A stretch of DNA of 64,000 bases, taken from the sequence record MW349128.1. One strand, written 5' to 3'. Position numbers and translations under genes: made by a program. Numbering within the stretch: position 1 is the first letter of the stretch; the number at the start of each line of letters is the position of its first letter. Shown in pieces: positions 31,930 to 63,734 of this stretch. The notes below the pieces were generated by a model. The model did no database searches. It worked only from the letters and a program-made list of their open reading frames with translations, and was not told where the DNA came from.

Positions 31930-31942
31930 ATAATATATATTT
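31930..31942 (-). promoter_or_regulatory. Putative early promoter motif AAATATATATTAT
   Basis: Exact 13-mer; six more intergenic copies on the + strand. Confidence 0.55.
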
Positions 31943-34747: not shown

Positions 34748-35029
34748 ATGAAGTGTATGAAAGCTATTAAAAGAATAATTGGTTCAGAAGAATTTATTAA
34801 CACTGTAAAGAAAACTATAGCTAGAACTAAGAAAGCAGAAGAGAAATTTTATGATTTAAATAATAGAGTTGATAAAGCTGTATCTTTAGCTAGTAAAGTT
34901 GTTGAAGATAATAAAGAAAAAGAAAGAAAAATTAAAGAACTAAAAGAAGCTTTATCTAAAGAGAAAATTAATAATAGAAGTATAAAATCCAGATATAATA
35001 GATTATTATATAAAAATGAGGGAAAATAA
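34748..35029 (+). CDS. Small basic coiled-coil protein, 93 aa
   Basis: ORF in operon. Confidence 0.72.
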   Translation: MKCMKAIKRIIGSEEFINTVKKTIARTKKAEEKFYDLNNRVDKAVSLASKVVEDNKEKERKIKELKEALSKEKINNRSIKSRYNRLLYKNEGK

Positions 35030-35031
35030 TT

Positions 35032-35259
35032 ATGAATCCAAATATTAATTTTAATGATAATGGAAAATCTATGGATGAACTTTATTCAAAGTTACAATTT
35101 TCATTTGCTAAACAAGTAGAAAAAGATATATTGGAAGATAATGAAAAAGATTCTCTAGAAAAAGAATTAAAAGAACTTAGAGAGCTTATTTTCGAAGTAG
35201 CTAAAAAATATGACGTTAAAGAAGTAAAAGATTATTTAGTTAGAAAAAATATGAAATAA
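35032..35259 (+). CDS. Small protein ending ...KEVKDYLVRKNMK
   Basis: ORF in operon; C-terminal tag. Confidence 0.75.
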   Translation: MNPNINFNDNGKSMDELYSKLQFSFAKQVEKDILEDNEKDSLEKELKELRELIFEVAKKYDVKEVKDYLVRKNMK

Positions 35260-37629: not shown

Positions 37630-37642
37630 AAATATATATTAT
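37630..37642 (+). promoter_or_regulatory. Putative early promoter motif AAATATATATTAT
   Basis: Exact 13-mer upstream of the MoxR gene. Confidence 0.55.
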
Positions 37643-51805: not shown

Positions 51806-53792
51806 ATGAAAGTAGATATGATAGATATTGAACAAGTCATAACTGATACAAATGCTAAAGAAGTAACCAATCCTGTATTTTTCGATTCAGGTATACTACC
51901 AAAAGAAGATGGTTTATTTTCATATGATATATTTGGTTTAATAGGTACTCCTGAAAGAAAAACCAATTTAGGTTGGATTAATTTAAAGGATAAATACCTT
52001 AATCCGGTGGCTTATAAAGCATTAAAAGATTTAGATAAAAATATTGAACTATGTATTCAGGGTTCAGAGTATTTTAAAGTAGAAAAAGGTCAATTAGTTC
52101 CTTCAGAAGATGGAGATACTGGACTGAATTTCTTATATGAAGTATTTGATGATTTAAAATTTAGAAAGAATGATTCTCGTATTAGATCTGAAAAAATTGA
52201 TATGATTAAAAATACAGATAAGCAAAAAATATTTGTAGATAAATGGCTAGTAATACCTGCTTTTTATAGAGACTTTAATCCTAATGAAACTTCAGGAGAA
52301 ATTCAAGATACTGAAGAAGTTAATAATATGTATTCTTCTATTATACGTTCTGTAGATGCTATTAGTTTTAATTCTTTTGGTTTTATTGCTAACAGTACTA
52401 AATATAATATACAAAATACATTATTTGAAATATATCAGAAATTTACTTCAGGAGAATTATCAGGTAAAACTGGTTTTATGCAAAAACGTATATTGGGTAA
52501 AACAGTAGATAATAGTACTCGTGCAGTTATTTCTTCACCTAAAATTAATTCGAATAGATGGGATGAAATGCAGATAGAGTTTGGTGAGTTAGGTGTACCA
52601 TTAACTCAATTAGTTACCTTATTTTTACCATTCTTTAATAAGTATATAATTGATTTTATTGAACTTCATAAAGATGCTTTCCAAACAGCTACTGGAAATG
52701 ATGAGAAAGAATTATCATTAGAAGAAGTGTATGAACAATTCGATGATAAATCTATTAAGAATATGCTAGAATTCTTTATTAAAGATCCTAATGAAAGATT
52801 TAGTCCTATATATGTAAATGATAGAGAAGGTAAACGCCATAAAGTTAAATTATTTGAAAAAACTTTGGGTAGAGATTTTACTGTAATTGATTTACTTTAT
52901 ATTGCTGCAACCGAAATAGTAGAAGATAAGCATGTTATGTATTCAAGATATCCGATTAATAAAATGGTCGCTGCTTAAAGTGATTTAAGTTGATAAACAT
53001 TGTTAATTGCTGAAATACTATTAATAAAGTTAATCAGCATCAATTAAATATAATTGTTCAACGACTAAATGCAATGATACTATTTAATAGTATATAATAT
53101 AGTCTAATTTATATAATACTTATATAAATATAATAAATGCGAAAATTTCTTGAACGTAGCACCTGCTAAAATTAAAATATTAACTACTGTTGATACTATT
53201 CCAGAAATAATTTTAGATGATATAGTATTAAAAGATTACCCTAAAGTAGTAAGAGAGTATCCTGTTGATGAAGATATTTTCTTAGATACTGCAATCATAC
53301 ACAATTCATATGCTCAAGCACTTGGTGCAGATTTTGATGGCAAAATTTTATATTACCATCATTAAATAATATTAATTGCTGGAAAATCTAATAAGATAAT
53401 CAGCATCAACTTAATAAAAGTTGTTCAACGACTAAATATATTACTAAAGAAGATATAGTCTAATTATATGTAAATACATGTATATAAAATGGATATGATT
53501 TCAATACGCTCTTTATGGTCTGTAGAAGCAAATAAAGAAGCTGATAAACTTATTAATAAGAAAACTAATTACTTAAACTACACAGGAAATAGTATACGTG
53601 GAGTTGGTAATGAGAGTAAGTTTGTATGCTCTCAATAAATTTCATTAATTGCTGGAAAAACAAAATTAATCAGCATCAACTTAATAAAAGTTGTTCAACG
53701 ACTAAATATGAAAATGATTTAAATATCATAAGATATAGTCTAATTATCATAAATATATGGTACAAGCTTTATATTCTTTAACTAAAGAATAA
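51806..53792 (+). CDS. Phage multisubunit RNA polymerase beta-prime fragment with catalytic DFDGD, spliced: join(51806..52956,53140..53341,53492..53617,53760..53792), 503 aa
   Basis: DGLFSYDIFG, LSGKTGFMQKRILGKTVDNSTRAVISSP; splicing gives SRYPI|ENF, GADFDG|DMISIR, GNES|VQALYSLTKE*. Confidence 0.88.
52957..53139 (+). ncRNA. ORF-less mini group I intron rpoC-I1 (183 nt)
   Basis: P1 CGAU/GUCG; P2 with GUGA loop; P3 CATTGT/GCAATG; P7; ends in G. Confidence 0.88.
53342..53491 (+). ncRNA. ORF-less mini group I intron rpoC-I2 (150 nt), C-A 5' splice site
   Basis: Splits DFDG|D; P1 GAUGGC/ACCAUC; P10 GAUAUG/UAUAUU; core motifs present; P8 vestigial. Confidence 0.85.
53618..53759 (+). ncRNA. ORF-less mini group I intron rpoC-I3 (142 nt)
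   Basis: P1 UGAGAGU/GCUCUCA; P10 GUACAAG/UUUGUAU; P3 TTTCAT/ATGAAA; P7; ends in G. Confidence 0.9.
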
Positions 53793-53803: not shown

Positions 53804-53834
53804 AGAGTAACGGTCTAATATAGATCGTTACTCT
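53804..53834 (+). terminator. Hairpin after the RNAP gene
   Basis: AGAGTAACGGTCTA-ata-TAGATCGTTACTCT; its position just after stop 53792 supports the last exon. Confidence 0.7.
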
Positions 53835-53866: not shown

Positions 53867-53879
53867 AAATATATATTAT
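53867..53879 (+). promoter_or_regulatory. Putative early promoter motif
   Basis: AAATATATATTAT heading the tag-gene array. Confidence 0.55.
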
Positions 53880-53912: not shown

Positions 53913-54545
53913 GTGATTATTTTGAATATTAATGATTATAGATATTTTAAAATGGATGATGGATTAATGCAAATCCATAAAGATAAAATTAAAGGAAATA
54001 TTACAGACTTGATAGGAATGTTGCATATTGATGTAGATCGTATCAAGGAAGATAATTTTCTAAATTTAGGTTTAGAAAGATTAAATATAAATATTTCTTT
54101 TGATAATCTTGAATTGGTATGGGAAAATATAAAATTTCAATTTAGTTTGTCGATAATTATTTTTGCTGAAAAACAAGAAAATGAATTAAATGAATATACA
54201 AGTAGTATAAGATTTTTTTATGATAATGAAGAAAGACAAATGGAGAGTGATAGATTTAAAAAACTTATATTAAATGTTGATTATATAAAAAATTTTGTAA
54301 GTTTAATGGTAGATGATAAAGAAATCGATGATTTAACAATTTCTATTTTTAATTATGATAAAAATGATTTTCATTTAAAATGTTCTGATATTGTAATTAG
54401 ATACTTATACGATTTAGAAAGAAGATTTAATGATAAAGGTTATGATTTGTTATTAAATGGTAAGAATATAAATGAATTAGAAGACAATGAAGAAAAAGAT
54501 ATTGATAAGATTAAGAAATATTTAGTGAAAGAAAATTTTAAATAA
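53913..54545 (+). CDS. C-terminal-tag family protein 1
   Basis: Ends DIDKIKKYLVKENFK*. Confidence 0.8.
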   Translation: MIILNINDYRYFKMDDGLMQIHKDKIKGNITDLIGMLHIDVDRIKEDNFLNLGLERLNINISFDNLELVWENIKFQFSLSIIIFAEKQENELNEYTSSIRFFYDNEERQMESDRFKKLILNVDYIKNFVSLMVDDKEIDDLTISIFNYDKNDFHLKCSDIVIRYLYDLERRFNDKGYDLLLNGKNINELEDNEEKDIDKIKKYLVKENFK

Positions 54546-54556
54546 GGAATGATAAA

Positions 54557-55219
54557 ATGGATAATATAAAAGTATACAATAATACAATAACTAATCAAAA
54601 ATTTTCTTTAGATAATAATGAAATTGATAATGGTAGATTCTTATATAAAGCTATGGAACAAGTAACAAATAAAAATCAAAAGAATATTGAATTTCTTGAT
54701 AGTAGTTTTCTAGTAAATAATATGCAGATGAATTTCCATTTTTATATTTACTCGGATTTTATTATAAACTTTAAAAATCTAACTGGAAAAGATAAAAATA
54801 TATTAATTAATGGTAATAATTCTGATATAACAAGGGCTTCATTTGTCTGTTTTTATGACAATATTGATAATGAAAGAATATTCCAAATTTATCTAAAAAC
54901 AAAGAAATCTAAAAAGATAAGAAATATATTAAAAGATTATGAAAGTGAGAAATATTTAATTGAAAGAATAATGTTAATTGGTGAAGATATATCTTTTAAA
55001 GTAGATTTTAAAAAAGAATATTTAGATAGTATAGAAGATAATGAATATAAGTCTTTAGACAGTTTGATTCACTATATATTAAAAGATATGTTAATTAATA
55101 TAGATGGAGAATTTATACCTTTTATGGAATTTATTAAAAATTATCTTTATTCTATATCTAAAGAAATTACTGATGAAAAAGAAATTAAGAAATATTTAAT
55201 TAAAGAAAATTTTAAATAA
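54557..55219 (+). CDS. C-terminal-tag family protein 2
   Basis: Ends EITDEKEIKKYLIKENFK*. Confidence 0.8.
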   Translation: MDNIKVYNNTITNQKFSLDNNEIDNGRFLYKAMEQVTNKNQKNIEFLDSSFLVNNMQMNFHFYIYSDFIINFKNLTGKDKNILINGNNSDITRASFVCFYDNIDNERIFQIYLKTKKSKKIRNILKDYESEKYLIERIMLIGEDISFKVDFKKEYLDSIEDNEYKSLDSLIHYILKDMLINIDGEFIPFMEFIKNYLYSISKEITDEKEIKKYLIKENFK

Positions 55220-55236
55220 TGGAGTTGAAATAGATA

Positions 55237-55722
55237 ATGATATATTACAAAAATAAAGTAAATGGTGAAATATATGAAGTTAATAATATTCATAGAAAAG
55301 ATGATGCTTTTTATTATGTGTTTGGTAATGAATTTAAAAAAGAGAATTCGTCTTTTTATAGATCTGATGGTAAAAAGATTGACCTATATGATGAAGATGT
55401 AGGAAGTATAAAATTGGAGTTTTTCTTAATTTACGGTTTTATTAATCTTCATTTAACTACGCACATTTCTTGGGATCTTAATAGTATTCCTTTTATACCT
55501 AAAAATATAGATTTAACAAACCAAAATCTTGTCATATCAGACTCTTCAATTGATCTTTATTATTTATTTTATAAAAGATTATGTTATGCGATAGATGTAA
55601 ATATGACACATTATAATATTCCATTAGAAAAATTTAATTTTGATAATGAAGATATATTTGAAATAATTTCAGAAGATTGCAAAGAAGTAAAAGATTTTAA
55701 AGTTAGAAATCATTTTAAATAA
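55237..55722 (+). CDS. C-terminal-tag family protein 3
   Basis: Ends EIISEDCKEVKDFKVRNHFK*. Confidence 0.8.
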   Translation: MIYYKNKVNGEIYEVNNIHRKDDAFYYVFGNEFKKENSSFYRSDGKKIDLYDEDVGSIKLEFFLIYGFINLHLTTHISWDLNSIPFIPKNIDLTNQNLVISDSSIDLYYLFYKRLCYAIDVNMTHYNIPLEKFNFDNEDIFEIISEDCKEVKDFKVRNHFK

Positions 55723-55735
55723 GGAGGAATTATTA

Positions 55736-56407
55736 ATGGAAGGTTATGATTTTGATTTATATATAACAAATAGGGATTTGAAAGATAATCATTTTATGAA
55801 AATAAATAAAGATAGGTATAATAATGATAGAGACTATATTGAAAGAGTAAATACTATCAATATGATAAAATTATTAACTCATGTCTCTTATCCTGATTAT
55901 GAAAATATTATATCATTTAATGTTGACTGTAAACTGAAATTAAGAGGTTTTAATGATTATAAAGATATTAAGTTATCTTATTATCAAGAAGTAGAATCAA
56001 AATCAACTATTATTGCCGGAATATCATTTGTAAAAACTGAATTAAATTTAATAAGTAAAGAGAAAGATAATAGATATCTAACAGATGAATTATTGTATGA
56101 GTATGATATGATGAAAATAAATACAAGTATAAATAATAAACTTAATACAATTAAATTAACTAAAAATGAAGCCACTGCTTTGAATAGTATTAGTCAGAGA
56201 AGTCCTAAATTTCATTTATCACTTGATAAGTTTAGAAGAGAATTCTTAAAGATGATAACTGAATTAAATAAGTATGAAGATATACAGTTTTTAATTGATG
56301 GAACGTATTATAGTTTAGAAGATATCAATTTATACAATAAAGATTTATTTAGAACTGCTACTGATAAGGAATTCAAGAATTATTTAGTTAAAGAAGGATT
56401 TAGATAA
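55736..56407 (+). CDS. C-terminal-tag family protein 4
   Basis: Ends TATDKEFKNYLVKEGFR*. Confidence 0.8.
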   Translation: MEGYDFDLYITNRDLKDNHFMKINKDRYNNDRDYIERVNTINMIKLLTHVSYPDYENIISFNVDCKLKLRGFNDYKDIKLSYYQEVESKSTIIAGISFVKTELNLISKEKDNRYLTDELLYEYDMMKINTSINNKLNTIKLTKNEATALNSISQRSPKFHLSLDKFRREFLKMITELNKYEDIQFLIDGTYYSLEDINLYNKDLFRTATDKEFKNYLVKEGFR

Positions 56408-56418
56408 AAAAGTGTATT

Positions 56419-56431
56419 AAATATATATTAT
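56419..56431 (+). promoter_or_regulatory. Putative early promoter motif
   Basis: AAATATATATTAT. Confidence 0.55.
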
Positions 56432-56443
56432 AAAAATGAGATA

Positions 56444-57145
56444 ATGAATCTAACAGAGTTCATTATCTCTAATAATATCTTAAATAGAGGAGATGAAGTT
56501 AATATGGATAATAATGAATATATAAATAATCATGAATTCTATAAAGTTGATAGTAGAGGACAAATAATAGTAACTAATAAAGATGTTACTAAAGATGAAT
56601 TAAATGTTAATCTATTCAAAGAATTATTTAATTTTAATAATGTTAAGAAAAAAATAGATGAAATTGGTTTATTTTCATTAAAAACCAATAGTATTTTGAT
56701 AAGGGACAAAAATACTTATTACAGAACTAAGAATTCTTATATAGATATAACAGACATGTGCAATAATAATTATTTTGAATTATATTTTGTATTTTCATTA
56801 TTAGATAAAAATGAAAATGGATGCAAGAATATAGGACCTTTTAAAAGTTCAATTAGCAGTCAAGTATTTTCATATACAGCTAAAATTCAAATTAAAAATA
56901 GAGACAATTTGGAACATGAATTAATTTCAAATATAATTGATCTCTTTAGTAGTAAAAAAGAAACAAATTTAATAATATATACAGTTGATTCAGTAGAGGA
57001 TGATATTGATTTTATGACAAGTCGAGAATTTAAGAAAGATTTAATTTTAGAAGAATATACACTCGATGAAATATACAAGGTCTTAGAAAAATTAGAAAGT
57101 GAAAAAGAAATTAAACAATACTTAGTTAAAGAAAATTTTAAATAG
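56444..57145 (+). CDS. C-terminal-tag family protein 5 (start possibly 56504)
   Basis: Ends LESEKEIKQYLVKENFK*. Confidence 0.8.
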   Translation: MNLTEFIISNNILNRGDEVNMDNNEYINNHEFYKVDSRGQIIVTNKDVTKDELNVNLFKELFNFNNVKKKIDEIGLFSLKTNSILIRDKNTYYRTKNSYIDITDMCNNNYFELYFVFSLLDKNENGCKNIGPFKSSISSQVFSYTAKIQIKNRDNLEHELISNIIDLFSSKKETNLIIYTVDSVEDDIDFMTSREFKKDLILEEYTLDEIYKVLEKLESEKEIKQYLVKENFK

Positions 57146-57151
57146 AGAGGA

Positions 57152-57697
57152 GTGAAATATATGGATTTAAAAAATTCTAGATTTTTAAGAAAAAGTAAAC
57201 ATCATAAAATAATACAATTTAAGCATAATAATATAAATAATGATCATGTATTAGGATTATCTTTATTAATATTATTTACTAATGTTTATATAAGAAGTGA
57301 TTCTGATGATATTAGTATTTATGATTATTTATCAAATGTATACATGAAAATAGATGGTTATTTAAAAGGTCCTTTATCAATAACGCATGGAGACAATAAT
57401 AGCGTATTAGTATATTCTAGAATTAGATTACCATTAGATCTATTTAAATTAAGAGAATACAATGTTAATACTAGATTATACACATATATTCTTCTTGATA
57501 ATTATGAAACTGATAAAGGAGATTTAATTCAATCCGTTGTTAATGCTTCTGATTATATTATTAAGAATGATAGAATTAAATTAAAAATAATTATTGATGG
57601 AATTGAAAAAGATATTGGTGGTATATTAAAATACTTTGATGAAGTTAAAGATGAAAAAGAAATTAAGAAATATTTAGTAGAAAAAAATTTTAAATAA
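57152..57697 (+). CDS. C-terminal-tag family protein 6
   Basis: Ends EVKDEKEIKKYLVEKNFK*. Confidence 0.8.
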   Translation: MKYMDLKNSRFLRKSKHHKIIQFKHNNINNDHVLGLSLLILFTNVYIRSDSDDISIYDYLSNVYMKIDGYLKGPLSITHGDNNSVLVYSRIRLPLDLFKLREYNVNTRLYTYILLDNYETDKGDLIQSVVNASDYIIKNDRIKLKIIIDGIEKDIGGILKYFDEVKDEKEIKKYLVEKNFK

Positions 57698-58332
57698 TGA
57701 AAGAGGTAATTAAAATGAATGAATCATTATATGTATCTGATATTTTAGAATATAGTTTCATTGATAAAAAGAGTCTTTCTAGAAAAGAATTATTTGATAT
57801 ATCTTTTGATCAATTTTTCAAACATCCAGGCTGTACTGGTTATGATGTTAAAAATGTTCGTCTTTGGATAAATTCTATGGATGGTCTAATTCTAAGATTC
57901 GGTTATGATATGAATAATCTTTTTTATGTAAATGAATTTGATCTTTTCGTAGATAAAAATGATGGTCAATATGAATTTAGTTTTGTATTAGATATTCCAG
58001 CGTTTTCAAAAAAAGAAGTTCACTGTGAAATAGGACCTTTTGTATCTAGAGAAGGTGAAATTGAATTTTATTTTAATGATACAGAAATATATACTGAAGG
58101 AAAAACTTTACTAGACAAAGCTAAAGAATACTTGACTAGAGATATATTTAATAAAAATGGTTCTGCATTTAATGTCTTTTCATTAAATAACGAAGACAAT
58201 ATTCATGATTACAAAATAAGTAAAGAGGATATAAAAGAAATCTATAATTTAAATATTATAGATGAACTATTTAAAGAAGTAACGGATGAAAAGGAAATTA
58301 AAAATTACTTAGTCAAGAAAGGTTTTGAATAA
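57697..58332 (+). CDS. C-terminal-tag family protein 7 (start possibly 57715)
   Basis: Ends EVTDEKEIKNYLVKKGFE*. Confidence 0.8.
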   Translation: MKEVIKMNESLYVSDILEYSFIDKKSLSRKELFDISFDQFFKHPGCTGYDVKNVRLWINSMDGLILRFGYDMNNLFYVNEFDLFVDKNDGQYEFSFVLDIPAFSKKEVHCEIGPFVSREGEIEFYFNDTEIYTEGKTLLDKAKEYLTRDIFNKNGSAFNVFSLNNEDNIHDYKISKEDIKEIYNLNIIDELFKEVTDEKEIKNYLVKKGFE

Positions 58333-59011
58333 TATGATTGATTTTAAATTATACAAAAATATAGATAATGGAAAATATATAGAAGCAAAAGATGGTATAG
58401 AAAAATATATTAGATCTTTTTCATTTATTAACTATGTGGATGATAATCTATACTTAGTGAAGCATGAAAAATATACAAAAGACGACTATATATTGAGACA
58501 TCAAGGAATGACTAGAAATTTCATTGTAATTAATCACAATAACATTATGTATAGAATAAAACACATAGAATTGACTATTCGGTTGAAGCTTAATCATGAA
58601 GCTATAATTAATATTAAACTTACACCTACAGCTGCAACTCTTAATAAATTTGAAAGTGTTGGAAATTTCACAAAAGTAAGAAACTTATTTTATAACCGGA
58701 AATTATTTAAATATGAAAATTATCCTAAATTTGAATATGATTATAAAGAAGAAGATCAGATTTTCTTTAGTGAAATGTTTGAAGCGGTATTAAAAGAAAT
58801 TGAAAATGATGATATTGATTTTTATGTAATTAATGAAGAAATTATAGAAGAATTTGAAGAAAATAAGAATAAAATAAAACTAGAAAATTTCTCGAAGTAT
58901 AAAGATGGTACATTAGAAGATTATAATATATTAAATTTCAGTAAGAAATTTATTGAAATTAAAGATGAGAAAGAAATTAAAAACTATTTAGTAAATAAAA
59001 ACTTTAGGTAA
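58325..59011 (+). CDS. C-terminal-tag family protein 8
   Basis: Ends EIKDEKEIKNYLVNKNFR*. Confidence 0.8.
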   Translation: MNNMIDFKLYKNIDNGKYIEAKDGIEKYIRSFSFINYVDDNLYLVKHEKYTKDDYILRHQGMTRNFIVINHNNIMYRIKHIELTIRLKLNHEAIINIKLTPTAATLNKFESVGNFTKVRNLFYNRKLFKYENYPKFEYDYKEEDQIFFSEMFEAVLKEIENDDIDFYVINEEIIEEFEENKNKIKLENFSKYKDGTLEDYNILNFSKKFIEIKDEKEIKNYLVNKNFR

Positions 59012-59057
59012 TTTAATTAACTTACTTTTATAATATATGAAAGAAGTGATTAACTAA

Positions 59058-59843
59058 ATGTCTAATGAAAATAACGGAATTGATTTAATTTCACAAATTA
59101 ATGATATGATGGAAGAATATAAAATGCTAGTTGGATTTAAATCTAAAATGGAACGTAAAGAAATTCAATTAGAAGAAAGAATTAGAGATTTAACTAAGAA
59201 TCTGAAATATCCTAAACATACATTTGTATCTAATATGGAAGCTAATATTATTAGTGTAGAAAAAGAAATTAAAGACACTATTATGCAAATGAAAAATGTT
59301 AAAAAAGATATTATTGACTTAACTATGAAAGCTCAGAAAATGGCTGAAGATGATGAATCTGAAGATAACTATAAAGTGCTTGCTAAAAATGTACTTAGTC
59401 AGCTTAATAATATGTCTAATAAAGATATATTAAACAGCATGACAGAAAATGAAGAAGATACTGCTGAAGATGAAGAAGATTTGAAAGATAAATTAGATCA
59501 AACTTTAGAAAATCTAAATAAAGATATAGATGAAGATGAAAAAGAAATTGAAAAAAGAGAGGAATTACAAAAAGAAGTTAATGAACTTAAACATCAAGAC
59601 TTAGCTTCTATTTTAAAAGTATATAAAGGCACATTGCAATTCTTTGTATTAGGTGATACTCCAAATGAATATGAACTAGTAATTGCTGATAATGAAATGA
59701 ATATCATTGAAGAAGATGAGCTTGAAGATGAATATCCAGAATTATTTACTATGACTAGAGATCTTATCTTTGAAGATGTTGAAGGTAATGATGAAATAGT
59801 TAAAGATGAATTTGGAAATATTTATCAAAAAGCAGAATTTTAG
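59058..59843 (+). CDS. Acidic coiled-coil hypothetical protein, 261 aa
   Basis: Long ORF, no tag. Confidence 0.8.
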   Translation: MSNENNGIDLISQINDMMEEYKMLVGFKSKMERKEIQLEERIRDLTKNLKYPKHTFVSNMEANIISVEKEIKDTIMQMKNVKKDIIDLTMKAQKMAEDDESEDNYKVLAKNVLSQLNNMSNKDILNSMTENEEDTAEDEEDLKDKLDQTLENLNKDIDEDEKEIEKREELQKEVNELKHQDLASILKVYKGTLQFFVLGDTPNEYELVIADNEMNIIEEDELEDEYPELFTMTRDLIFEDVEGNDEIVKDEFGNIYQKAEF

Positions 59844-59851
59844 ATTATTTT

Positions 59852-59884
59852 GCCCATAATATATCGCATTAATATATTATGGGT
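59852..59884 (+). terminator. Hairpin, probable terminator
   Basis: GCCCATAATATAT ... ATATATTATGGGT. Confidence 0.65.
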
Positions 59885-59911
59885 ATTTATTATATAGGAG
59901 ATGAATTAAAT

Positions 59912-60037
59912 ATGTTAAAAAGATTATATGAATTATTAACTAGAAAAAGATTTGAAAAGAAACTATATGAATTTAAATTTAGTTATCAAGACCATGAGCA
60001 TCTTAATGAAGTTCATGAATTTAGTAAAAACAATTAA
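59912..60037 (+). CDS. Small protein, 41 aa (below the ORF-track cutoff)
   Basis: AGGAG SD; MLKRLYELLTRKRFEKKLYEFKFSYQDHEHLNEVHEFSKNN*. Confidence 0.6.
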   Translation: MLKRLYELLTRKRFEKKLYEFKFSYQDHEHLNEVHEFSKNN

Positions 60038-60040
60038 GGA

Positions 60041-60451
60041 GTGATATTATTGCTATCAGAATACAGATTAAATAGTAATAAAGAAAATATTAAACAACTA
60101 TTAAGAGATTATGGTTTTAGAAAAGATTCTTATACTAAAGCGTTATTATATAGAAAGCGTGTGACTGATCCAAATGATATTTTGTTCATAGAAGCTGAAG
60201 TGGTTATTGAAACTAATTCAGATCTAGTTAAATTAAATTATTATGATAATAAACATAATAGATTTAATCCTTCTAATGAATCGCCAGAGGTTCAAAAAGG
60301 TTTAAGTATATTAGAAGACATGAAAGAAAAAGAATTATTAATTGAACCAGAATTAACTCAAAATAAAGAAGAAAAAGAAGTTCTTGATAGACTTAAAGAA
60401 CAACGTGAAGAAATGGAAAATGGACAAGTATCACCTAATTCTGAAGATTAG
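60041..60451 (+). CDS. Hypothetical protein, 136 aa
   Basis: AGGAG SD overlapping the upstream stop. Confidence 0.75.
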   Translation: MILLLSEYRLNSNKENIKQLLRDYGFRKDSYTKALLYRKRVTDPNDILFIEAEVVIETNSDLVKLNYYDNKHNRFNPSNESPEVQKGLSILEDMKEKELLIEPELTQNKEEKEVLDRLKEQREEMENGQVSPNSED

Positions 60452-60454
60452 AAT

Positions 60455-60467
60455 AAATATATATTAT
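60455..60467 (+). promoter_or_regulatory. Putative early promoter motif
   Basis: AAATATATATTAT followed by a hairpin at 60478-60505. Confidence 0.55.
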
Positions 60468-60531
60468 AAAAACGTTATCCCAATACTATTAAATTAGTAT
60501 TGGGATTATTATAATAAAAGGAGTTAAATAA

Positions 60532-61311
60532 ATGGAGAAAATTAACAAATACTATGCTAGTAAATCTGAAAAAGAATTTATGGAATTAACTTTCAATGAA
60601 AATGAAACAAACTATTTTGACTTTAAATGGAAAGTTTTAAGCAAATTATTCGCTGAAATGCAGTTAAAGTATAATGAAAGATTTTTCATAACTCATGAAG
60701 AATATGATGATAATGATGGCTTATTTGGTGTTAGATTATTTTTTGATGCTTTCCCTACAGTAAAATATAAATATAAGGGTAAAAAAAATAAAATGGAACT
60801 TCTCTTTTACGCTACAATACGTTTTAGTTTAAAAGAAGAAGACGATAACTATATTAAGATTAGAGCTTTCCCTGTATATAATAATAGTAAGATAGGTAAA
60901 AGATTATTTAGTAAAAGATCTGGTATATTTGATGATGATGGTGAACTATATTTACATCATAGCTTTAATGAAGAAATTATATCTCGATTTTTAAAATATT
61001 ATAAAAGTCATATACAAAAAGGAAAAAGAGCTGTAGAACTCAAAGATGATTTATATAAAATATTTAATGATACAAATAAATTAATCTTTGAATTACTGGA
61101 TCAGATACAAGACCATTCAGATATTGAATTTCTTATTGCACCGGATTGGGATTTTAGCGTTAAGGAAAAGGTAAAAGAAAAAGGTTTTAGTTTTGAAAAA
61201 GAATATGATAAGTATATCAGTTTAAATGATTTTGACGCTGATGCATATTTTAGAGAAATAACTGATGAGAAAGAGATTAAAAAATTTAAAGTCAAGAAAG
61301 GATTTTCCTAA
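60532..61311 (+). CDS. C-terminal-tag family protein 9
   Basis: Ends EITDEKEIKKFKVKKGFS*. Confidence 0.8.
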   Translation: MEKINKYYASKSEKEFMELTFNENETNYFDFKWKVLSKLFAEMQLKYNERFFITHEEYDDNDGLFGVRLFFDAFPTVKYKYKGKKNKMELLFYATIRFSLKEEDDNYIKIRAFPVYNNSKIGKRLFSKRSGIFDDDGELYLHHSFNEEIISRFLKYYKSHIQKGKRAVELKDDLYKIFNDTNKLIFELLDQIQDHSDIEFLIAPDWDFSVKEKVKEKGFSFEKEYDKYISLNDFDADAYFREITDEKEIKKFKVKKGFS

Positions 61312-61312
61312 T

Positions 61313-62122
61313 ATGAAAAATAATACAAAATATTTTATAGATAAAGAAAGAGACGAATTAATTGAAATTGATAGAAATTATCTTAACCGATATGAATATA
61401 TTGCATATGTATTAACCACTATGGATATTAATAATATTTTAAGTAGTAAAGGATACGCTAAATCTTTCATAGATAATATTTCTAAAGAAGAAGATTATAT
61501 GAATTTTCATTATAAAGAAATTGATAATGATATTTATTTTATAGACAAACATAATAAAAATGATGCTTTTAAAAGATTTAATACTAATTTTCATATTAAT
61601 TTCAATACTGGTAGAATGGATAAAATTGAAACTGGAGAATTTAAATTAGATTTTCATTTTGATAATTCATTATATAAAGAATATTTCAATACAATTACTA
61701 ATGGTTTAGTAAATGAAAATAATTTAGTTAATGAAGGAATAAATGAAAAAATGAGATCTCTTGTAAATATTGAATTATTTGAAAAGAGTTTATACGAGAT
61801 CAAATATAATAATGAATCATTTATGGATTTAAGTTTTTCAATATCGGCATTTGAGAAAAATCCTATTATTAAATTTATAGAAGATTTTAAGGATTTATTC
61901 TTTATAATATTATATCAGAATAATCTTAGTGTATTAATGTCTCTTTATGAGATTAAATATATGTATAAAGATGATATAGAATTTTATATTAGTTTCTCCA
62001 GTAAGGGTGGCGGTTTAATTAATTTATTACATCTAATAGAAAGTGATGAAAATGATTTATTCAAAGAATTAACAGATGAAAAAGATATTAAAAATTTTAA
62101 AGTCAAGAAAGGATTTTCATAA
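61313..62122 (+). CDS. C-terminal-tag family protein 10 (start ATG 61313)
   Basis: Ends ELTDEKDIKNFKVKKGFS*. Confidence 0.8.
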   Translation: MKNNTKYFIDKERDELIEIDRNYLNRYEYIAYVLTTMDINNILSSKGYAKSFIDNISKEEDYMNFHYKEIDNDIYFIDKHNKNDAFKRFNTNFHINFNTGRMDKIETGEFKLDFHFDNSLYKEYFNTITNGLVNENNLVNEGINEKMRSLVNIELFEKSLYEIKYNNESFMDLSFSISAFEKNPIIKFIEDFKDLFFIILYQNNLSVLMSLYEIKYMYKDDIEFYISFSSKGGGLINLLHLIESDENDLFKELTDEKDIKNFKVKKGFS

Positions 62123-62859
62123 TGGAATATAATAATTATTATAGATATAAATTAGATGGAAAAATACTTCACTTTAATATGGATAGAACTGACTTGCGTA
62201 GAGATATATTGGCTGAAATATTTACTAAAATGCAGATGGAATATATTTATAAAAATGAAGAAATGATCATCAGACCAAGAAACTTTAGACATCGATCTGT
62301 ACTTTCTTTAGTTTATTCTCTTTTTAATGATAAAGTAGTTAAAATCGAACAAATTTCTAAAATATTAATTAAAGATCATGCAAGAGATTTATTAAAATAT
62401 AATACGAATTTTAATTTAGAATTTAATTCTATTTTAGATAAAGGAATATTTAAAAAAGATTTTCCAAAGGAATCTTTTCATGACAAAACAGAAAGTAATA
62501 TGAATGGATACTCAATTTTAAGTGATAATATAAGACATACTAGTGAAAATTTTGTTAATCTAGAAGATAGAGATCGTATTTTAAATTTTGGAGAAATAGA
62601 ATTTCTAGTCAAAGAATTTAATAGAGCTCTTTTAAATTATCTTATGGATTTAGTGGAATATGGAGATTTAGAATTAAATGTTAAGAAATCAGAGTTAGCA
62701 TATTTTATGACCGGAATATATACAAAAATGGAAGAACAAGAAGACAAATTATTTTCTATATTCGATTATAAATTTTTACTTAATGAATCTGGGTTATTTG
62801 AAGAGGTTACAGATGAAAAAGTTATTAAAGAATATTTAGTGAAAAATAATTTTAAATAA
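62122..62859 (+). CDS. C-terminal-tag family protein 11
   Basis: Ends EVTDEKVIKEYLVKNNFK*. Confidence 0.8.
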   Translation: MEYNNYYRYKLDGKILHFNMDRTDLRRDILAEIFTKMQMEYIYKNEEMIIRPRNFRHRSVLSLVYSLFNDKVVKIEQISKILIKDHARDLLKYNTNFNLEFNSILDKGIFKKDFPKESFHDKTESNMNGYSILSDNIRHTSENFVNLEDRDRILNFGEIEFLVKEFNRALLNYLMDLVEYGDLELNVKKSELAYFMTGIYTKMEEQEDKLFSIFDYKFLLNESGLFEEVTDEKVIKEYLVKNNFK

Positions 62860-62873
62860 AGGAGGATTTTTCG

Positions 62874-63734
62874 TTGAATAAAAATAAAGATTATTATCTA
62901 TATAAATTAGAAGACAAAATGTACACAGTTGAAAATGAAATTGAAGATTTATCGGATATAGGTATAAAGAATTTTATAACTCCAGAAATTAATACTTTAA
63001 GTCATATATTCTCAAATTTACAATTCTCACATAAAGAAAATAGAAACCCTGATAAATCTCCTTTTATGCTTTTTAATATTTTTAAAGAGGAACCAAGACA
63101 TATTAAAGGAGCTATTATAGATATAATGCCATTTCTACCTTTTTTAGCTTATAATATAAACGATTCAAAAATATTAAATAATTTTAGTATAAATTTAAAT
63201 TCAGATGTCAAATTTCATGAAAAAGGTGAATATAAAGATAAAGACGATAATGATATTTATGTACTTAAAAATGGCATTGATCTTAGTTTAGAATTGAGTA
63301 TTTCAAATCTTGGAACTGAATTAGACAAAAAATTATTTAATGAATCATGTGGAAATGTCTTTGAGTTTAAAGGAGAAAATAATACATTAGTATTTAAAAT
63401 AAATAAATTTATACCTGAAGAAGATCCAATTCAACTATATAATGCTTTAAAGAAAAATAATCTAGGTCATCATAGGATGTATAAATTTCTTCTAAATATA
63501 AATAATGAAATACTAACATTATTGAATAAAATAACCAATCATCTTAATATAAATTTTTATTTAAATGAAAGATATTTTTTAGAATTTAGCAAAGATGATT
63601 TAAAAATAAAAGAAGAAGATATTAAAGATAAATATGTAGAATTATTTAGTTATATAGATGAAACAGATACATTTGAGAAAATTAATGATGAAAAGATTAT
63701 AGCTAAATATAAAGTAAGAGATAATTTTAAATAA
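62874..63734 (+). CDS. C-terminal-tag family protein 12
   Basis: Ends KINDEKIIAKYKVRDNFK*. Confidence 0.8.
   Translation: MNKNKDYYLYKLEDKMYTVENEIEDLSDIGIKNFITPEINTLSHIFSNLQFSHKENRNPDKSPFMLFNIFKEEPRHIKGAIIDIMPFLPFLAYNINDSKILNNFSINLNSDVKFHEKGEYKDKDDNDIYVLKNGIDLSLELSISNLGTELDKKLFNESCGNVFEFKGENNTLVFKINKFIPEEDPIQLYNALKKNNLGHHRMYKFLLNINNEILTLLNKITNHLNINFYLNERYFLEFSKDDLKIKEEDIKDKYVELFSYIDETDTFEKINDEKIIAKYKVRDNFK

Follow-up and report, generated by a model that had tools for sequence, protein, structure and literature searches.

Why do tandem phage proteins whose bodies show no visible similarity all end in the same short peptide? The question is raised by positions 53913-63734 of a stretch of 64,000 nucleotides (hereafter the window), where 12 of 14 tandem genes encode proteins of 161-286 amino acids (aa) carrying a common C-terminal peptide, referred to below as the tail. 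This segment is 100% identical to bases 115913-125734 of Staphylococcus phage Machias (MW349128.1; 274,478 bp), and the window therefore corresponds to Machias bases 62001-126000. The genes of the array, CPT_Machias_120 to 134, are each annotated as 'hypothetical protein' in the record. The answer that we favour, and hold tentatively, is that they may form a diversifying family, expressed early and absent from virions, in which a single partner, common to all members, reads the constant C-terminal module from its free end.

A constant peptide at the stop codon

The 12 proteins end in the pattern E-x-x-D-E-K-E-I-K-x-Y/F-L/K-V-K-x-N/G-F-K, directly followed by the stop codon. Such a peptide had been proposed from the letters of the DNA alone (the sequence-only reading), and both a hidden Markov model (HMM) of the tail and inspection of the open reading frames (ORFs) confirm it. 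Scored on all 881 six-frame ORFs of the window, the 22-residue HMM gave 27-38 bits in the 12 array genes, every time at the extreme C-terminal end; the next match (15 bits), likewise C-terminal, lay at 35020-35256 and belongs to CPT_Machias_101, and the remaining ORFs reached at most 10 bits. The run of tailed genes is broken by two untagged genes (g09 and g10) and one small ORF. The genes are laid out as follows, the second coordinate of each tailed gene being the end of its ORF.

53913..54545, + strand: g01 (CPT_Machias_120), tailed; tail HMM 27 bits; the true start may be the TTG at 53922
54557..55219, + strand: g02 (Machias_121), tailed, 220 aa; tail HMM 36.7 bits
55237..55722, + strand: g03 (Machias_122), tailed, 161 aa; most divergent tail; tail HMM 33.1 bits
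55736..56407, + strand: g04 (Machias_123), tailed, 223 aa
56504..57145, + strand: g05 (Machias_124), tailed, 213 aa from the annotated start; the ORF opens at 56444
57161..57697, + strand: g06 (Machias_125), tailed, 178 aa
57715..58332, + strand: g07 (Machias_126), tailed, 205 aa
58334..59011, + strand: g08 (Machias_127), tailed, 225 aa
59058..59843, + strand: g09 (Machias_128), untagged; very acidic (net charge -36, pI 4.3), coiled-coil-like N-terminal half
59912..60037, + strand: small annotated ORF (Machias_129), untagged
60050..60451, + strand: g10 (Machias_130; ORF 60041-60451), untagged; 81-97% identity across the clade
60532..61311, + strand: g11 (Machias_131), tailed, long class, 259 aa
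61313..62122, + strand: g12 (Machias_132), tailed, long class, 269 aa
62122..62859, + strand: g13 (Machias_133), tailed, long class, 245 aa
62874..63734, + strand: g14 (Machias_134), tailed, long class, 286 aa
35032..35259, + strand: CPT_Machias_101, 75 aa, the 13th tail-bearing gene, outside the array; tail HMM 15 bits at the extreme C-terminal end

The start of g01 is doubtful: a GGAG lies 1 base before the annotated GTG (53913) and 10 bases before the TTG at 53922, and orthologs of this gene begin at the position equivalent to that TTG. CPT_Machias_101 is located 19 kb from the array as the last gene of a RecD-like helicase operon, and its tail is slightly divergent, Met replacing the Phe before the last residue.

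Among 94 family members from eight related phages, the penultimate residue is Phe in 94 of 94. It is preceded by Asn in 49 and by Gly in 28, and followed by a last residue that is Lys in 63, Arg in 14 and Ser in 11. A Y-x-x-x-[DE] secretion-type motif was considered and rejected, as its position in the tail is not conserved among the 12 proteins.

A genome-wide census of the tail was made on the relative PB50 (OR770614), which is 95-99% identical to Machias; Machias itself was scanned within the window. The tail core ends 22 of the 499 PB50 ORFs of at least 70 aa, against 0.04 expected from the internal frequency of the pattern, and every one of the 20 tail HMM matches that reach 11.7 bits ends no more than 2 residues from the stop. 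Half of the tail-ending ORFs (11 of 22) map outside the array, several of them with other body types. Among them are a second tandem cluster, whose ~150-aa proteins have in addition an N-terminal motif described below, and proteins with apparently different, helix-rich bodies (a pair of 182 and 185 aa, a 258-aa protein and a 75-aa protein). The non-array tailed ORFs of PB50 are the following.

72659-73213, - strand: tailed ORF
75995-76456, - strand: tailed ORF
98638-100103, - strand: three tailed genes
105235-106380, - strand: two tailed genes
108303-108911, - strand: tailed ORF
137180-137968, - strand: tailed ORF
262153-262806, - strand: tailed ORF
29-271: the eleventh tailed ORF, ortholog of window 35032-35259

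The scan over the window and relatives that the sequence-only reading had suggested found the tail at the C-termini of the 12 array proteins and at further C-termini elsewhere. Given that genes outside the array bear it as well, the tail is carried by roughly 24 genes, or ~8% of the genes of the phage, and its presence at the end of proteins with other body types makes a portable tag possible.

The bodies diverge in sequence and evolve fast

The bodies had been described as lacking similarity by eye, and this holds true at the level of sequence: phmmer run on the tail-trimmed bodies of the 12 proteins returned no cross matches, and Smith-Waterman z-scores against shuffles had a median of -0.02 for body-body and 0.01 for body-decoy comparisons, the exceptions being the pairs g11 and g14 (z about 5) and g12 and g13 (z about 4). 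Since Smith-Waterman with shuffles shows no body-body excess, the alignments produced by uncorrected full-length blastp are compositional. The 94 members from the eight phages fall into 14 phmmer clusters, and hhalign links only B00 with B02 (95%), B04 with B12 (67%) and B06 with B08 (60%). Genes g11 to g14, which make up the third sub-block of the array, align over their full length and have several motifs in common. An HMM of the long-class bodies scored against short-class bodies, and an hhalign comparison of the two body profiles, gave scores no better than decoys. A weak N-terminal motif, aromatic-rich (Tyr-rich) and located on a predicted hairpin, is common to members; in a leave-one-out search with it, the left-out member had a mean rank of 5.9 of 40 among proteins of the same phage.

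Between Machias and AH12, the pooled ratio of nonsynonymous to synonymous substitution rates (dN/dS) was 0.49 for bodies, 0.09 for tails (last 20 codons) and 0.13 for neighbouring genes; when Machias was compared with MarsHill instead, 0.53, 0.28 and 0.22 were obtained. In the comparison with AH12, the bodies thus evolve at about four times the rate of core genes, the tail is as constrained as core genes, and the gap between tail and body is five-fold. Identity between orthologs is 0.53-0.77 for bodies versus 0.83-0.89 for neighbours (the untagged g09 and g10 included), and the tail is more conserved than the body in 10 of 11 ortholog groups.

Predicted structures suggest one divergent fold

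The AlphaFold2 (AF2) model of g11, built on a 13-sequence alignment, reached a predicted local distance difference test (pLDDT) value of 72.9 and a predicted template modelling score (pTM) of 0.77. Its elements follow the order N-terminal beta-hairpin, helix, four-strand sheet, helices, long helix then strand, low-confidence linker, short strand and tail helix. The model of g05, a short-class protein, was built on 11 sequences (best pLDDT 79.1, pTM 0.71) and presents the same order of elements. Neither model is similar to any PDB structure; for g11, the best Foldseek match there had an E-value of 0.17 and a template modelling (TM) score below 0.2. Against predicted viral structures (BFVD), both models matched only apparent members of this family, the matches being assigned to it by length and identity only. 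The g05 model matched the 258-aa ortholog of the long-class g11 (TM 0.53/0.46, probability 1.0) as well as two more long-class models (TM 0.41-0.52), and the g11 model matched proteins of 223 and 177 aa (probability 0.97-0.99); overall, cross-class matches had probabilities of 0.97-1.0 at TM scores of about 0.3-0.5. Because the predicted elements come in a like order and the two classes find each other in Foldseek, the array is probably built on one very divergent fold and not on unrelated domains.

In both models, the tail forms a module made of a short strand (Phe-x-Glu-hydrophobic), a capping Thr/Ser-Asp, a helix of about ten residues, Asn or Gly, the invariant Phe and one last residue. Its local pLDDT is 84-87, and it is preceded by a linker at 46-59. 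The structure prediction that had been suggested as a check for body homology therefore points to one probable fold for the bodies, and as to the tail, AF2 sets its strand in a sheet. The modular system proposed at the outset, in which variable domains were thought to share a docking tail, survives in part: the bodies do diversify while the tail stays constant (dN/dS of 0.49 versus 0.09), but the AF2 and Foldseek results and the N-terminal motif indicate that the bodies are probably not unrelated domains.

Early-type promoters and absence from virion proteomes

Three copies of a 13-base element identical to annotated early promoters of the Bacillus phage AR9 head the three sub-blocks of the array, as the sequence-only reading had noticed for a putative early promoter.

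53867..53879, + strand: early-promoter-like 13-mer P1, heads g01-g04; identical to annotated AR9 early promoters
56419..56431, + strand: early-promoter-like 13-mer P2, heads g05-g10
60455..60467, + strand: early-promoter-like 13-mer P3, heads g11-g14
53804..53834, + strand: terminator-like hairpin, closes the upstream unit
59851..59885, + strand: terminator-like hairpin, after g09
60477..60506, strand not assigned: 12-bp hairpin between P3 and g11, within 10 bases of P3; a terminator in the record annotation

Seven exact copies of the AR9 13-mer occur in the window (at 31930 on the minus strand and at 37630, 43604, 49284, 53867, 56419 and 60455 on the plus strand) against 0.23 expected, with no single-mismatch copy, and all seven are oriented toward following genes on the same strand. 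PB50 has 26 exact copies. The hairpin at 60477..60506 might form a stem-loop at the 5' end of the g11-g14 transcript, or be the terminator of the preceding unit placed beyond the next promoter. Since P2 (56419) sits just upstream of the first ATG of the g05 ORF (56444), the annotated start of this gene at 56504 is favoured. Judging from the identity of the promoters, the array is most likely expressed early.

Two virion proteomes of relatives have been published. In phage SA1, 52 virion proteins were validated by mass spectrometry, and ORFs 179-191, the orthologs of the array, have no mass-spectrometry data among them (PMC9096886, supplementary table). In phage DC4, 15 virion proteins were detected, and genes 00025-00042 are absent from them (PMC10638138). 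By these two proteomes the family is most likely non-virion, and the packaging receptor that had been listed among possible hubs for the tail is disfavoured, no array ortholog being found in either set. Taken together, the early-type promoters and the absence from the SA1 and DC4 virion proteomes are suggestive of a family that is most likely both early and non-virion.

What the tail may do

In the reading that we tentatively favour, most members would adopt one very divergent alpha/beta fold with an N-terminal beta-hairpin, a helix, a four-strand sheet and a long helix plus strand, and a variable linker would join this body to the constant C-terminal module. The surfaces of the bodies would diversify fast, and genes would be gained and lost, as at a host-virus conflict interface; the tail would be kept constant because one common partner reads it from the C-terminus. 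This partner may be a host or phage protein on which all members dock, or a shared mode of assembly; ClpC/ClpX, the phage MoxR-vWA chaperone and a membrane were among the candidate hubs named in the sequence-only reading. A role in host takeover or anti-defence is, like the single partner, putative. We favour recognition over a purely structural role because charged positions of the tail are conserved, its distance to the free C-terminus is invariant, the dN/dS of tail and body differ five-fold, and the tail is found on other bodies.

The untagged g09 and g10 are, weakly, candidate partners of the tail. Every one of the ten sequenced Staphylococcus jumbo phages has a single copy of each, neither occurs elsewhere among 50,697 phage records, and both evolve at a much lower rate than the surrounding tagged genes. 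It is their co-distribution and co-transcription with the array that makes them candidates, and only weak ones since many genes are clade-specific.

A more specific proposal, which we regard as possible though rather doubtful, is that the tail is a portable C-terminal address label and that a single reader, of host or phage origin, recognises the Phe-X-COOH end together with the preceding helix.

Several points weigh against the favoured reading. The structural models are built on shallow alignments (11-13 sequences), and of the five g05 models all but the best are poor (pLDDT 54-67). Cross-class TM scores are only 0.3-0.5 and the common tail may supply part of them, and the comparison of long- and short-class body profiles is not significant. 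With its strand set in a sheet at a pLDDT of 84-87, the tail may be integral to the fold and conserved for folding alone. The raised dN/dS of the bodies may stem from relaxed constraint and not from conflict, neither virion proteome is complete, and the single partner is hypothetical.

Some of these points lead to the strongest alternative, which we nevertheless consider unlikely: the array would be an ordinary family of paralogs in which the C-terminal strand and helix belong to the folding core, perhaps closing around the N-terminal hairpin, with no partner common to the members. The strand placement and confidence of the tail just mentioned agree with this explanation, as do the same order of elements in both classes, the matches of each class to predicted structures of the other, and the conservation, if weak, of the N-terminal motif as well. 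It accounts less well for conserved tail positions that include charged, probably exposed residues, for the presence of exactly one residue after the Phe in 94 of 94 members, for the tail core on different bodies in PB50 (the 75-aa protein, the 182-185-aa pair and the 258-aa protein), and for the five-fold difference in dN/dS between tail and body.

Less probable still is a degron, by which a host or phage protease would read the tail and remove the early proteins as a group when late functions take over; this would be a special case of the recognition reading that we favour. Placement exactly at the C-terminus, early-type promoters and absence from virion proteomes would all be expected of such a signal, but searches of Pfam, NCBI-style names, PADLOC and PDB sequences returned no match to a known tag or adaptor family, and AF2 predicts the tail to be folded and not free.

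Three further explanations appear very improbable. A capsid-targeting peptide, by which the proteins would be packed into the head and injected, in the manner of T4 internal proteins or encapsulin cargo peptides, would fit a constant terminal peptide on variable bodies, and the gene directly downstream of the array is annotated as virion-associated; the absence of array orthologs from the 52 SA1 and 15 DC4 virion proteins and the early type of all three promoters speak against it. We give equally little weight to a membrane-targeting amphipathic helix. The sequence-only reading had taken the spacing of Ile, Tyr, Leu and Phe to fit such a helix, and the net charge of the tail (+1 to +4) and the five hydrophobic residues among its last 14 would be compatible with it. 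Contrary to that suggestion, the hydrophobic moment of the tail helix is 0.04-0.42, which is ordinary within each protein (about the 30th percentile, as a median, of its 14-mers), the mean hydrophobicity is negative, and the conserved hydrophobic positions fall on two opposite faces; an amphipathic membrane helix was rejected. Just as improbable is that the last ~18 residues act as a nascent peptide in the ribosome at termination, for instance by tuning termination or the coupling to the next gene. The invariant distance of each conserved position to the stop would be explained in this way, and the genes are tightly packed, three of them abutting or overlapping the next; yet the tail also ends the operon-final genes g14 and 35032-35259, bears no likeness to a described arrest peptide in the searches run, and is predicted as a folded strand and helix.

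As for the DNA itself, the earlier proposal of selection at the protein level, and not for a DNA site, is upheld by codon usage. In the 12 tails, codon positions 1 and 2 are 73% identical and position 3 is 57% identical, and identical tail residues use the same codon in 0.70 of cases versus an expectation of 0.69 based on how the bodies use codons; neither a DNA site nor recent gene conversion is thus apparent. At the DNA level, the tail is constrained locally in the Gly variant, in which the Lys-Lys-Gly codons double as the Shine-Dalgarno site of the abutting or overlapping next gene. This overlap occurs in g07, g11 and g12, that is, in 3 of 4 Gly variants and 0 of 8 other tails.

58311-58332: Gly-variant tail of g07, overlapping the ribosome-binding site of the next gene
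61290-61311: Gly-variant tail of g11, overlapping the ribosome-binding site of the next gene
62101-62122: Gly-variant tail of g12, overlapping the ribosome-binding site of the next gene

Apart from these ribosome-binding sites, which it could claim in its favour, the notion that the tails resemble each other as a DNA-level element (whether a site of recombination, a result of gene conversion or a regulatory sequence where genes end) deserves practically no credence, a DNA-level repeat being rejected by the codon test and third positions being less alike than the other two.

Distribution and genomic setting

The group comprises ten sequenced Staphylococcus jumbo phages (PB50, AH12, PALS_2, S6, UFV_DC4, LY01, MarsHill, Madawaska, SA1 and Machias), which form a non-nucleus-forming clade with uracil-DNA. 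Outside the group, the Bacillus phages AR9/PBS1, which also have uracil-DNA, are closest, sharing 43% identity in a piece of the virion RNA polymerase beta' subunit. The syntenic arrays of eight phages held between 7 (LY01) and 14 tailed genes by a first count, to which three weaker-tailed members were later added. Presence and absence of the genes vary patchily among the phages, and only one ortholog group is universal.

The family is restricted to Staphylococcus jumbo phages. A search of representative proteins gave 18 matches among 1.84 billion, all inside the family, and neither a protein pattern nor a degenerate DNA pattern of tail plus stop retrieved a relative from IMG/VR. Homologs in AR9 were looked for in 133 of its 251 kb, the syntenic slot included, and rejected, as this portion contains no family homolog and no tail-like C-termini. 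One genome each of 185,579 species showed no enrichment of the tail, with 51 scattered single matches of which none were in Staphylococcus, and mimicry of a Staphylococcus C-terminus was rejected on this basis. Pfam (scanned with the 26-residue tails as well), PHROGs and PADLOC gave no consistent match for the array proteins, and PDB sequence profiles matched neither the long class, the short class nor the tail. A word-indexed protein search with the 12-protein alignment, flooded with low-complexity candidates, returned 5 matches only. The family is not described in the papers on Staphylococcus jumbo phages that we consulted.

The array is flanked on one side by the intron-split virion RNA polymerase beta' gene and on the other by a gene for an SbcC-like 'virion associated protein'. 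In AR9, the syntenic slot between virion RNA polymerase beta' and the SbcC-like ATPase (locus L009, 21189-24057) contains five small unrelated genes, among them those of a Zn-finger protein and a NADAR-family protein, and in the wider phage group the content of this slot seems to vary. The virion RNA polymerase beta' gene (window 51806-53365) and both DNA polymerase genes that flank the array (locus L001, 1495-3785 and 21902-25477) have three exons each in the record annotation, and homing-endonuclease genes occupy some of the gaps between the exons of these flanking genes.

Relation to known systems

The array resembles several families built on a constant module and variable bodies. As in the poxvirus ankyrin-PRANC proteins and the multigene families (MGF) of African swine fever virus, its members are tandem paralogs with fast-evolving bodies, differ in copy number between close strains, carry one constant short terminal element and are probably expressed early. 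PRANC is a C-terminal F-box-like domain that follows ankyrin repeats and binds Skp1 of the host Skp1-cullin-F-box (SCF) ubiquitin ligase. In the array, unlike in the PRANC proteins, the constant element must end exactly at the C-terminus, and the host is a bacterium without an SCF ligase, no such ligase being known to us in staphylococci. The conceptual parallel with PRANC and F-box adaptors drawn in the sequence-only reading does not extend to membership, a Pfam scan of the 12 proteins and their 26-residue tails having found no PRANC, F-box or ankyrin match. Lineage-specific expansion has a precedent among jumbo phages in the Zn-ribbon expansion of phage G (PMC7824862). The array has no sequence or fold relation to the poxvirus PRANC, MGF or phage G Zn-ribbon families.

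The T4 internal proteins likewise combine unrelated-looking bodies with only a short terminal peptide in common, and are encoded at a locus that is hypervariable between related phages. Their capsid-targeting peptide is N-terminal and is removed by the prohead protease, and the proteins are found in virions; the array differs in that its signal is C-terminal (94 of 94), its promoters are early-type and its orthologs are absent from two virion proteomes. C-terminal recognition peptides, such as protease degrons and the cargo-loading peptides of encapsulins, share with the tail a position fixed to the free C-terminus and an apparent portability onto different bodies. The tail is longer (~20 residues) and predicted to fold as a strand and helix, and it has no sequence match to a described class in the searches run. 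The early genes of AR9/PBS1 have in common with the array the identical 13-base promoter element upstream, whereas AR9 is devoid of family homologs and of tail-like C-termini in the portion scanned. The array represents a new family that works like constant-module/variable-body families and terminal targeting peptides and is a member of none of them.

Implications for phage biology

Across the ten sequenced Staphylococcus jumbo phages, a large part of the genes labelled 'hypothetical' belongs to this family. Should the conservation of the tail be only structural, the array would be a clean natural example of one fold that has diverged past sequence recognition with both termini fixed. If the tail is an address label, some 24 early proteins would be brought to one place, complex or fate, and the phage would possess a system for protein sorting or timed turnover that has no described precedent in phages. 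If all members use it for docking or as an address, a single short peptide would bring order to ~8% of the proteome in a phage of 270 kb, and the tail would offer a direct handle for finding a hub needed by the early programme of the phage. In that case the variable bodies would make up a set of effectors, each specific to a target, in the takeover or evasion of a Gram-positive host.

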